From Octopus sinensis (lineage: Eukaryota), in NCBI RefSeq assembly GCF_006345805.1, contig NC_043006.1:71734001-71798000 (forward strand): a stretch of DNA of 64,000 nucleotides, in the 5' to 3' direction. The translations under genes and the position numbers were made by a program. Shown here piece after piece: positions 24,001 to 27,000 of this stretch; within the stretch, counting starts at the first letter, position 1, and every line of letters begins with the position of its first letter. The notes beneath the pieces were generated by a model, which worked only from the letters and a program-made list of their open reading frames with translations, ran no database searches and had not been told where the DNA came from.

Positions 24001-27000
24001 ACATTTACAACCAGCTCTATCCCCATTATTACCCCAGCAAAACCCTTTATAATTACCATCTTGGGCCATATGGAAAAAAATTAACATCACACAGTCACAC
24101 TCAGGTGTCTCATGCTCGCACTCAGGTATCTCATGTTCGTTCACACTTACTGCATCCTTTTGGAGGATTGAGTCACACACAAAGCCATGCATTACACAAG
24201 CATGCACATTTATTGCATACTCACTCACACTTGGCTCACCAGCATGGAGGTTCACTTCACACTCAGAGTCATTTGTCACACAAGCATGAGCACATAGCTC
24301 ATGCTCACTCACACTTGTTGCACCCATATGAAGGGTTGATCCACACTCAAAGCCATGCATTACACAAGCATGCACGTTTATTGCACTCTCACTCCCACTT
24401 GGCCCATCTTCACGGAGGGTTACTTCACACTCAAAGTCACTTGTCACACAAACTCAAGCACTTAGCTCATGCTGACTCACACTTAACTCATGCTCACTCA
24501 CATTTAGCTCATGCTAACTCACACTTGTTATATCCTTATAGAGGGTTGAGCCACACTCAAAGTCATACATTACACAAGCATGCACATTTATTGCACTCTC
24601 ACTCCCACTTGGCCCATCTTCACGGAGGGTTGCTTCACACTCAAAGTCACTTGTCACACAAACTTGAGCACTTAGCTCATGCTGACTCACATTTAGCTCA
24701 TGCTCACTCACATTTAGCTCATGCTCACTCACACTTGTTACATCCTAATGGAGGGTTGAGCCACACTCAAAGCCATGCATTACACAAGCATGCACATTTA
24801 TTGCACTCTGACTCCCACTTGGCTCATCTTCATGGAGGGTTACTTCACACTCAAAGTCACTTGTCACACAAACTCGAGCACTTAGCTCATGCTCACTCAC
24901 ACTTGTTGCACCCATATGAAGGGTTGATCCACACTCAAAGCCATGCATTAGACAAGCATGCACGTTTATTGCACTCCCACTCCCACTTGGCCCATCTTCA
25001 CGGAGGGTTACTTCACACTCAAAGTCACTTGTCACACAAACTTGAGCACTTAGCTCATGCTGACTCACACTTAACTCATGCTCACTCACATTTAGCTCAT
25101 GCTAACTCACACTTGTTATATCCTTATAGAGGGTTGAGCCACACTCAAAGTCATACATTACACAAGCATGCACATTTATTGCACTCTCACTCCCACTTGG
25201 CCCATCTTCATGGAGGGTTACTTCACACTCAAAGTCACTTGTCACACAAACTTGAGCACTTAGCTCATGCTGACTCACACTTAACTCATGCTCACTTACA
25301 TTTAGCTCATGCTCACTCACACTTGTTACATCCTAATGGAGGGTTGAGCCACACTCAAAGCCATGCATTACACAAGCATGCACATTTATTGCATGCCGAT
25401 TCGCACTTGGTGCACAAACACAGTAGGCTGCTGCACACATTGCATAGTCACACTTCCCACAGTCACACATCGCACAGTCACACATCGCACAGTCACACAT
25501 CAAACAGTCACACATCACACAGTCACACATCACACAGTCAAACATCACACAGTCAAACATCACACAGTCAAACATCTCATAGTCACACTCACACCCCTCG
25601 TACCTTCTTAAACTTGCCACACTACTATACAGATACTCAAGAACCCTCTCTGGGACATCATTATCCCTATGATCTTTACTCTTCTAAAACAAACTCCTTT
25701 CACACCTTTTCAGACCCTTATCATTTTAAATCAAGCAAATATCATGATGATGTAACCCAAACTTACAATGATGATGATTACTTACCCCGTTATAAAAGAT
25801 CTGTTTCTAAACCCACTAAACCCACTAAACCCACAAAACCCACTCCTCCTAAATCTCATAACTATCCTGACAAGCATCCTTATCATACTAAATATGATTA
25901 TCAAGGCTCTAAATATTATCACCGTTATGGTTCTAAATCTTATAACTATTATGATAAGGGATATCCTTCCGGTCCCAAATCACACAAATATATTAAATCC
26001 TACCCAAAACCTTATTATCCTTATAACTACAAAAATTTTTACCCTTCTAAAAGTTATCCCCCTCACCCCTTTTCAAACCCTTACTATTCTAAACAAAGCA
26101 AATATTATGATGGTGCAACCAATTTTTATGATGATGATGATGATGATTACTTACCCCGTTATAAAAGATCTGTTTCTAAACCTCTTCTTCCTCATGCCTT
26201 GGCACACCATTTTCTTGATAAACATCATTTTCATGCTGAATCTCACCATCATCACGTCTTTAAACATCATCGTTATCATGGCTTTAAATCTTTTCACCAT
26301 CATAAGCCTAAATCTTATCCCCATCATAAGCCTAAATATTATCCCCATCATAAGCCTAAATCTTATCCCTATCATAAGCCTAAATCTTATCCCTATCATA
26401 AGCCTAAATCTTATCCCTATCATAAGCCTAAATCTTATCCCTATCATAAGCCTAAATCTTATCGTCATGGTCCCTATCGCTTTTATAGTAAAGGACACCC
26501 TTCCAATTTCAGATCTCACCGACATCAGCAACACTATGAATTCCCTTATTATTGGAATCCCTACTACATTCCTGAATATGACCATTTTAGTCGATCTTAC
26601 AACCCCAAATCCTACTGGCCTCCTTTTGGAAGACATAAGAGATCTGCTGATAAAAACTCATATTCTTCAAAACCCCACCAACATTACCCCTATGATGACT
26701 GTTACTCATTGAAACTCCAACCCCCTCATCACCACTATGGAAGCTTTTACACTTCTAAACCCCATGACCCTCACCACTATGGAAGCTCTTACTCTTCTAA
26801 ACACCATAACTATCACCACTATGGAAGCTCTTACTCTTCTAAACACTATGACACTCACCACTATGGAAGCTCTTACTATTCTAAACACCATGATCCTCAC
26901 CACTATGGAAGCTCTTACTATTCTAAACACCATGATCCTCACCACTATGGAAGCTCTTACTATTCTAAACACCATGATCCTCACTACTATGGAAGCTCTT

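Follow-up and report, generated by a model that had tools for sequence, protein, structure and literature searches.

A histidine-rich heptad array found in a 64,000-nucleotide stretch of the Octopus sinensis genome (contig NC_043006.1, positions 71,734,001 to 71,798,000 of the forward strand; hereafter the window, to whose numbering the coordinates below refer) is coding sequence inside an animal haem peroxidase gene. The array is the largest module of a low-complexity insertion of about 1,170 residues in a surface-type loop of the catalytic domain. We favour, at a probability of roughly 0.55, the view that this insertion is a convertase-processed cassette joining enzyme and structural material for the hardening of egg envelope or cement, in which the His array would serve as a predicted-helical, pH-titratable module.

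The array lies within a haem peroxidase gene

The window DNA is about 36% GC, with dense TA/CA microsatellites and transposon relics, and an Rfam scan of it gave no matches. Its sole long open reading frame (ORF) spans 23673-27287 (+; 1,205 codons), all others being of about 320 codons or fewer. Motif scans placed peroxidase exons on both sides of this ORF and on the same strand, from 18.2 kb out to 41 kb, so that the notion of the peroxidase as a mere neighbouring gene was rejected; the downstream ORF fragment consisting of exon F alone matches Pfam An_peroxidase with an E-value of 1.7e-21. The resulting gene model joins eleven exons across ten introns, each in phase and with canonical GT-AG borders, and encodes a partial protein of 1,748 residues whose N-terminus is missing. 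Its parts are listed here with the evidence for each (slashes mark splice or cleavage points):

18220..18377, plus strand: peroxidase exon A (..FRTANGTCNNLGNKYWGAAYNEYSRLIPPAYIDG; also read ..TANGTCNN..YIDG), start of the An_peroxidase domain (motif scan, splice sites and phase)
20191..20370, plus strand: peroxidase exon B, with LPNARVV and the distal-His motif FFSQAISHDLSD (motif scan, phmmer alignment, splice phase)
21949..21976, plus strand: micro-exon of 28 nt encoding NIDCCSGPL(R) (CAG/../GTAAGT sites, (I/D)CC motif)
23711..27282, plus strand: giant exon (exon C), 3,572 nt, that is 1 nt + 1,190 codons + 1 nt (open frame, splice sites, orthologous exon)
23712..23768, plus strand: N-side peroxidase stub NKSICFPIVYSSHCPLDKC, with the CFPI motif and the Cys at the loop base (motif scan, comparison with other peroxidases)
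27219..27282, plus strand: C-side peroxidase stub PCKKSCINLVRSSKSPFISTV(R) (phmmer alignment to myeloperoxidase DCIPFFRS...IT(I)R)
30400..30489, plus strand: peroxidase exon D ((R)EQVNEVTSFLDGSFIYG), with the Ca-site motif (motif scan, splice phase)
30954..31061, plus strand: peroxidase exon D' (gene model, splice phase)
33791..34036, plus strand: peroxidase exon E (GDSRDSSN..LHTIFLREHNRIA), with the distal Arg (motif scan, alignment)
36246..36762, plus strand: peroxidase exon F, with the proximal His in FRFSH and GRDHGLPGY (Pfam, alignment)
38512..38669, plus strand: peroxidase exon G (GDRFWYQN) (motif scan, gene model)
40293..40392, plus strand: peroxidase exon H (gene model)
40959..41049, plus strand: last coding exon, stop codon included (gene model, splice phase)

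The giant exon carries peroxidase sequence at both ends and the His/Tyr/Lys/Pro-rich insertion inside. Both of its splice sites, the acceptor TTTCCAG/ and the donor /GTAAGT, keep phase with the neighbouring exons, its junction with exon D yields R-EQVNEVTSFLD, and at a length of 1 + 1,190 x 3 + 1 nt it could not be skipped without a frameshift. Between exons B and D the motif CFP[ILVF] occurs only once, in the N-side stub, and the CFPI and C..F.RS segments of the giant ORF are found nowhere else between the flanking exons; in the phmmer comparison with myeloperoxidase (MPO), the ORF ends fall on CFPL...DCIPFFRS. The micro-exon brings exon B and the giant exon back into phase; it is the best of three candidates left by a search constrained on phase and splice sites. 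Its peptide matches the ..IDCC.. motif of other mollusc peroxidases, and NIDCCGGPLR is present in the Octopus bimaculoides protein XP_052826901.1 of RefSeq. The one-nucleotide phase conflict had pointed to a weak donor or to another acceptor at 23737, an idea that was dropped since the micro-exon resolves the conflict and RefSeq agrees.

Without the insert, the spliced core aligns with the Pfam An_peroxidase family (PF03098) in one stretch over positions 1-530 of 530, with 458 bits (cut-off 25) and an E-value of 4.6e-137, and it matches MPO and LPO in the PDB with E-values of about 1e-56. The distance from CFPI to C..F.RS is 1,166 residues here and 12-17 residues in the 43 other peroxidases in which both motifs were recognisable. 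The insert sits a few residues downstream of the point at which MPO is cut into light and heavy chains, as judged by alignment to MPO ...TPEPA / VNCETSC..CFPL.

The first-pass annotation of this DNA had implied a stand-alone His-rich protein, and in this regard a free-standing coiled-coil or fibrillar protein nested by chance in a peroxidase intron would accord with the in-frame ATG that opens the ORF and with the absence of any Pfam match to the giant ORF alone. The ORF ends, however, carry the sole CFPI and C..F.RS segments and are needed to complete the core, the splicing keeps phase with the exons on either side, and RefSeq has a single gene in O. bimaculoides. We therefore hold this account to be extremely improbable: splice phases and domain completeness together exclude a free-standing structural gene.

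Chemistry of the peroxidase core

The distal Gln-x3-His, the distal Arg and the proximal His are all kept in the phmmer alignment (SQAISHD for GQLLDHD, GDSRDSS for GDTRSSE and FRFSH for FRYGH, respectively), and the Ca-site motif is retained as well. Four positions of the haem site depart from MPO, and they do so identically in both Octopus species: the haem ester-link residues Asp94 and Glu242 are replaced by Ser, Met243 by Asn and Asn421 by Phe (kept and altered positions were read at 20331-20348, 33791-33830 and 36590-36630 of the window). The loss of the ester-link residues is compatible with PF03098 membership but argues against a haem chemistry of the MPO/LPO kind, and, judging from these residues, the enzyme probably holds its haem non-covalently.

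Heptads and pentamers

The single open frame of the giant exon reads through 24141-25592 (+) as 484 residues, while the other five frames across the array carry stops in every unit. The modules of the insertion are the following:

23949..23978, plus strand: poly-His tract H10, upstream of the array (translation; H7 in O. bimaculoides)
24141..25442, plus strand: His-heptad array of 62 heptads, 434 residues in seven units, predicted helical
25443..25592, plus strand: HS(H/Q)TS pentamer array, 10 copies (Tandem Repeats Finder, 15-bp period, 10.8 copies; translation)
25788..25799, plus strand: dibasic site 1, DDDYLPRYKR/SVSKP (O. bimaculoides YLIRYKR/SVSKP)
26157..26168, plus strand: dibasic site 2, DDDDDDYLPRYKR/SVSKP (O. 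bimaculoides YFPRYKR/SISKS)
26285..26463, plus strand: KPKSYPYH octapeptide array, 24-bp period, 7.5 copies (Tandem Repeats Finder; HGPKYYPH repeats in O. bimaculoides)
26631..26642, plus strand: dibasic site 3, GRHKR/SADK (O. bimaculoides ERYKR/SANE)
26729..27212, plus strand: HHYGSSYSSKHxDP 14-residue array, 42-bp period, 11.5 copies (Tandem Repeats Finder; shorter in O. bimaculoides)

From the letters alone, the first-pass annotation had described heptads with His at positions 2 and 5 and often at 7, units that differ in length by whole heptads, 22 His among the 70 residues of unit 3, and ten HS(H/Q)TS pentamers reaching 25592; our parse bears out this description in every detail, coordinates included. 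The 62 heptads follow one another with zero register breaks under the consensus S-H-L-(L/A/S)-H-x-(H/Q), with S, G, A or E at position 1, L, A or S at position 4 and T, A, K or P at position 6. The 133 His residues (30.6% of the array) all stand at position 2 (46 of the 62 heptads), position 5 (59) or position 7 (28), and Leu occupies position 3 in 53. The autocorrelation of His stands at 0.63 for lags 7 and 14 and at 0.74 for lag 28.

The seven units measure 56, 70, 70, 56, 70, 70 and 42 residues, each opening with SHLL(H/Y)P. Tandem Repeats Finder resolved nested periods of 21, 84, 168, 210 and 378 bp, the hierarchy of duplication runs from 21 to 84 to 168/210 to 588 bp, and units 2 and 5, like units 3 and 6, differ in 4-5 of 70 codons (about 98% identical). 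Although the regularity of the array is far above that expected from composition by chance, it reflects tandem duplication, and the 62 heptads are thus not independent events.

Putative processing sites and predicted fragments

Three R-x-K-R/S sites are common to both species: RYKR/SVSKP, RYKR/S(V/I)SK and R(H/Y)KR/SA. Sites of the R-x-K/R-R kind kept between modules are expected of a convertase-processed secretory polyprotein. Cutting at these sites would, by computation, divide the 1,190 residues of the giant exon into four fragments, namely 1-696 (26% His), 697-819 (21% Tyr, 15% Lys and 15% Pro), 820-977 (20% His, 15% Tyr, 13% Lys and 15% Pro) and 978-1190 (21% Ser, 19% Tyr and 16% His). 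A scan for dibasic sites found no cleavage site within the 434-residue array.

The O. bimaculoides orthologue and evolution of the insert

Among 5.8 billion proteins, close relatives were found in O. bimaculoides only, all others being at most 39% identical. The RefSeq model XP_052826901.1 (LOC128248768, 1,294 residues) unites in one gene the same micro-exon, the same His/Tyr-rich exon and the same peroxidase; its cluster-mate in UniProt, A0A0L8IF09, is truncated, its model beginning only within the intron that precedes exon D. The O. bimaculoides locus (L001, on CM046609.1) is syntenic with the window, with 85-93% identity in introns and 88-98% protein identity in the peroxidase exons (90% for exon A), at synonymous divergences (dS) of 0.12-0.19. 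The poly-His tract, the pentamers, the Tyr/Lys/Pro-rich stretches, the octapeptide array, the 14-mer array (HHYGSSYSSK..) and the three dibasic sites are shared. On this comparison of sequences, the whole insertion is orthologous in O. bimaculoides.

The orthologous His array is interrupted by an assembly gap of 1,340 N (L001:15068-16407), on either side of which the sequenced exon parts are open. XP_052826901.1 splices around this gap, and the array is consequently under-reported; the reading that O. bimaculoides has an array of only 4-5 heptads was rejected on the same ground, as the model skips the gap. The flanks of the O. bimaculoides array contain 30.5% His in units of 66 residues (198 bp), against 70 residues (210 bp) in the window, a difference made up of one 15-bp deletion (loss of LHGGL) and one 3-bp insertion. 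In that species the register drifts so that His comes to stand at every residue modulo 7, although a local lag-7 signal of 0.48-0.50 persists. What the two species have in common is thus the composition and the local H-x-x-H-x-H / Leu pattern, not the global register. It had been proposed earlier that orthologue indels would stay at multiples of 21 bp; the 15-bp deletion, the 3-bp insertion and the register drift run counter to that expectation and indicate that a strict coiled-coil register is not under conservation.

The repeat units also date the array. Units 2/5 and 3/6 differ by about 2%, compared with an interspecies dS of 12-19%, from which it follows that the present length of 62 heptads postdates the species split. 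The exact heptad periodicity is best explained as a by-product of recent 21-bp-based tandem amplification rather than as a conserved coiled-coil requirement.

Selection on the insert is uneven. Between the window and O. bimaculoides, the ratio of nonsynonymous to synonymous substitution (omega) is 0.22 in the peroxidase exons, 0.43 in the N part of the insert and 0.06 in the pentamer array, where 2 replacements stand against 7 synonymous changes and where copy number and variant order are identical between species. By the measure of this alignment, the pentamer array is by far the most constrained and best-conserved part of the insert. The rest of the C part evolves near neutrality (omega 0.87), and its DNA identity, about 75%, lies below that of the introns.

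These patterns bear directly on a reading in which replication slippage inflated a permissive surface loop that is cut out or left dangling, the array having no role beyond being soluble and harmless. Indels of array units that are not multiples of 21 bp, the very recent amplification implied by the near-identity of units 2/5 and 3/6, the near-neutral C part with repeat DNA diverging faster than introns, and the variation of 14-mer and octamer copy numbers between species would all agree with tolerated junk, and the propeptide and hexapeptide of MPO might, by analogy, provide a precedent for its removal. Such a loop would nevertheless have to account for a frame of 1,190 codons that stays open in DNA of about 40% GC, as do both sequenced parts of the O. 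bimaculoides exon, for a His content held at about 30.5% in the arrays of both species, for the conservation of three dibasic sites together with their acidic or Tyr contexts, and for the constraint on the pentamers and on the N part. The composition is, moreover, close to that of known sclerotised or adhesive proteins. On balance we consider this account rather unlikely.

Expression in the oviducal gland of Octopus maya

A study of the O. maya oviducal gland reported primers with which a transcript named "chorion peroxidase" was assayed by quantitative PCR (qPCR), the product measuring 116 bp (PMC8976471). On the window gene, its forward primer (2 mismatches) bridges exons A and B and its reverse primer (3 mismatches) falls within exon B; the spliced window sequence gives a product of exactly 116 bp, as published. 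Such a primer match would be expected by chance in the window at about 2e-4. The O. bimaculoides sequence shows 1 mismatch to the reverse primer; to the forward primer it shows 3 when unspliced and, by our reading, 1 once the junction is joined. The primer match and the exact amplicon length thus identify the O. maya transcript as the orthologue of the window gene.

Levels of this transcript reach their peak at fertilisation and egg-laying and fall in senescent females (stage effect P = 0.0161 by reverse-transcription qPCR), and the authors discuss it in the context of chorion hardening (PMC8976471). The zinc transporter gene Catsup is up in the gland at the same stage as the peroxidase (PMC8976471), a co-induction that hints, weakly and circumstantially, at metal handling by the gland. 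A role as a melanogenic peroxidase of the ink gland was considered too, and was set aside as the literature search gave no evidence tying this divergent gene to ink.

The Catsup co-induction could also speak for an array that serves as a store of Zn, Cu or Ni, or as a loose haem binder, on behalf of a peroxidase that has no covalent haem tether. Both haem ester-link residues are lost and the 133 His form HxxH and HxxxH pairs, and His-rich repeat proteins such as HRP2 of Plasmodium falciparum are known to bind many haems. This case is purely circumstantial, however, the register and length of the array are poorly conserved, and the proximal and distal haem ligands are intact, so that the core should hold its own haem. 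We judge such a metal or haem buffer quite improbable.

Predicted structure and physical chemistry

AlphaFold2 folds two 70-residue units into two helices of 58-66 residues that turn at the Pro-containing SHLLYPYRGLS and pack as an antiparallel hairpin (predicted local distance difference test, pLDDT, 84.7; predicted template modelling score, pTM, 0.63). A Foldseek search of the PDB with this model returned generic antiparallel coiled-coil hairpins only, with E-values of at least 0.3. The hydrophobic moment of the array peaks at 100-103 degrees, with 0.21 against 0.147 +/- 0.013 for shuffled sequences, and L3, H7 and L/A4 fall on one helix face while H2, H5 and S1 fall on the other. When the array was tested as a coiled coil, the best register had Leu at position d in 53 of 62 heptads, position a being taken by His in 28 of them, by Gln in 13, by Leu in 6 and by other residues in 15. 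The helical segment proposed in the first-pass annotation agrees with the predicted helices and the moment peak, although a strict register is not conserved. Its suggestion of a cross-linking role is in keeping with the place of the array in an enzyme of a cross-linking type, whose O. maya orthologue is induced in the gland by which eggs are coated and cemented.

With a His pKa of 6.5, the calculated net charge of the array is +136 at pH 5, +73 at pH 6.5 and +9 at pH 8.1. This strongly pH-dependent charge and the amphipathic pattern, with an L3/L4/H7 face opposite an H2/H5 face, would also suit a cassette for egg defence, from which cleavage would free His-rich helices and cationic Tyr/Lys peptides that, activated by pH or Zn, act against microbes or withhold metal beside the peroxidase and its hydrogen peroxide. 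Haem peroxidases are classic antimicrobial enzymes, and the dibasic processing sites as well as the expression in an egg-coating gland fit such a function. The 434-residue array lacks cut sites, though, and would stay within a domain of more than 550 residues instead of yielding short peptides. It is nearly uncharged at seawater pH, which is unfavourable for membrane attack, and neither Pfam on the ORF nor a HMMER scan of 1.84 billion representatives revealed similarity to known antimicrobial families. Egg defence accordingly appears improbable to us.

A proposed model for a processed cassette

The findings presented here allow us to outline how a cassette for hardening might operate. The precursor would pass through the secretory pathway, where furin-type convertases would cut the three dibasic sites, giving a two-chain peroxidase whose small chain would keep the His-helix array (26% His) and whose large chain would keep the 14-mer array of Tyr, Ser and His, and setting free two Tyr/Lys/Pro-rich peptides that resemble mussel foot proteins. 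At acidic granule pH the His array would be a soluble, extended polycation. Upon release at seawater pH it would lose about 125 charges and its amphipathic helices could pack as antiparallel hairpins, whose exposed H-x-x-H and H-x-x-x-H stripes would then be open to Zn or Cu, or to attack by oxidised Tyr. The attached peroxidase would finally fix the material covalently, through dityrosine or links of the His-Tyr/DOPA (3,4-dihydroxyphenylalanine) type, in egg envelope, stalk or cement.

A more specific version, which we advance only tentatively, regards the gene as encoding an enzyme-plus-substrate polyprotein: the peroxidase loop would carry structural and adhesive modules (a His-helix array, mfp-like Tyr/Lys/Pro peptides and a Tyr/Ser/His array) separated by convertase sites, and one product would supply both the cross-linker and a pH- or metal-triggered material by which octopus eggs are hardened or cemented. 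Here the His-heptad array may be a fast-evolving setting switch.

Several observations weigh against the hardening cassette. A search of the window for 5' exons or a signal-peptide exon found none (both O. bimaculoides protein models are N-terminally incomplete as well), and the lost ester-link residues together with Asn421 replaced by Phe leave the catalytic strength uncertain. The primer evidence concerns expression of the gene, inclusion of the giant exon in the mRNA lying outside the reach of the amplicon, and for O. sinensis the giant exon is read from genomic sequence. The full 434-residue array, modelled in AlphaFold2 without an alignment, came out as mostly helix at a pLDDT of 64 and a pTM of 0.22, and single-sequence AlphaFold tends toward helices for amphipathic repeats. 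To these must be added the unconserved register and the near-neutral, fast-diverging C part described above.

Should the hardening cassette prove correct, it would provide a candidate molecular basis for the hardening of octopus egg envelope and stalk, for which the searched literature describes no structural proteins.

Neighbouring elements in the window

The introns of the peroxidase gene contain a relic of a mariner-type transposase (..PYSPDIAPSDFHLF..) and one reverse-transcriptase-like ORF, and further reverse-transcriptase-like ORFs lie downstream of the gene; together these elements fall at 37542-37838 (-), 39587-39991 (-) and 43279-44818 (-). Repeated elements resembling short interspersed nuclear elements and sharing the translated motif ..GAFYVPPAQVPD.. 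were located at 5545-5858, 11924-12187, 27507-27960 and 47400-47976, one of them directly downstream of the giant exon. The next gene downstream, at about 51700-64000 (+), encodes a PrmA/PRMT-like methyltransferase with the motif VIADIGAGTGRF at about 63.1 kb; its counterpart in O. bimaculoides (L001:34913-41342) is annotated with PF06325.

Comparison with known systems

A word-index search with the whole ORF produced no matches, and an exhaustive HMMER scan of the same 1.84 billion representatives produced 78, of which the roughly 20 inspected were all unrelated short-period repeat proteins. The searched literature, including that on octopus beak, ink and egg-case proteins, makes no mention of the insert or its motifs. 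In RefSeq, XP_052826901.1 bears the label "uncharacterized", and in the O. maya study the transcript figures as a chorion peroxidase like any other.

The host enzyme belongs with the animal haem peroxidases (chorion peroxidase, peroxinectin, myeloperoxidase; PF03098), as indicated by the full-length domain match once the insert is removed, the distal Gln/His/Arg, proximal His and Ca-site motif, and the annotation of its O. maya orthologue as chorion peroxidase. It departs from them in its identity of at most 39% to non-octopus members, in the loop of 1,166 residues and in the Ser residues at the ester-link positions. The predicted maturation recalls that of MPO, since a cut near the same place would give a small and a large chain; MPO, however, removes a hexapeptide, whereas in the octopus protein more than 1,100 residues lie between the chains and cleavage is proposed from its dibasic sites. 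Peroxidasin likewise is a haem peroxidase covalently joined to modules that place the enzyme in a matrix which it cross-links, but these are folded LRR, Ig and vWC domains at its ends, whereas the extra sequence of the octopus protein is of low complexity and lies inside the catalytic domain.

Haem peroxidases and His-rich structural repeats are both known kinds; their union in one catalytic domain, as a cassette that exceeds 1,100 residues and bears convertase sites, appears to be undescribed. If our interpretation is right, this would be a design new among described haem peroxidases, with more than 1,100 residues of presumptive substrate or scaffold within the catalytic domain, flanked by processing sites. 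The gene also offers a clear case of very rapid tandem-repeat turnover within an otherwise constrained enzyme gene, and illustrates how such exons come to be mis-modelled, the UniProt entry being truncated and the RefSeq model skipping the assembly gap in the array.

With regard to the repeats, the His-rich decapeptides of mussel byssus mfp-4 and the His-rich flanks of the preCols are short tandem repeats of about 20-30% His, for which binding of Cu or Zn and a pH switch upon secretion into seawater have been proposed, and the KPKSYPYH repeats resemble the decapeptide of the Tyr/Lys/Pro-rich mfp-1 in composition. No sequence homology to the byssus proteins was detected, and the octopus protein differs from them in its heptads, its predicted helices and its embedding in an enzyme. 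The array further shares with His-rich amphipathic helices (peptides of the LAH4 type, His-X3-His sites, His at position a of coiled coils) the placement of His at i, i+3 and i+4 and the Leu face; those peptides are 20-30 residues long, or the sites single, whereas the octopus array strings together 62 heptads with Pro/Gly turns.

Finally, the squid beak proteins DgHBPs and Nvjp-1 of the Nereis jaw are His-rich structural proteins of sclerotised or metal-hardened tissue that undergo pH-driven condensation, as we propose for the octopus array. They are, however, Gly/Ala/His-rich (GHG-type) and disordered, in contrast to an array of the Leu/Ser/His type that is predicted to be helical, and HBPs were not found in O. 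bimaculoides (PMC9068888). The first-pass annotation had set the array apart from the GHG-type beak proteins, a distinction upheld by its 5% Gly, its lack of GHG repeats and the absence of a homologue among the proteins searched. The octopus array may offer a compact model for pH- or metal-switched His-helix materials, unlike the Gly-rich proteins of squid beak and worm jaw.

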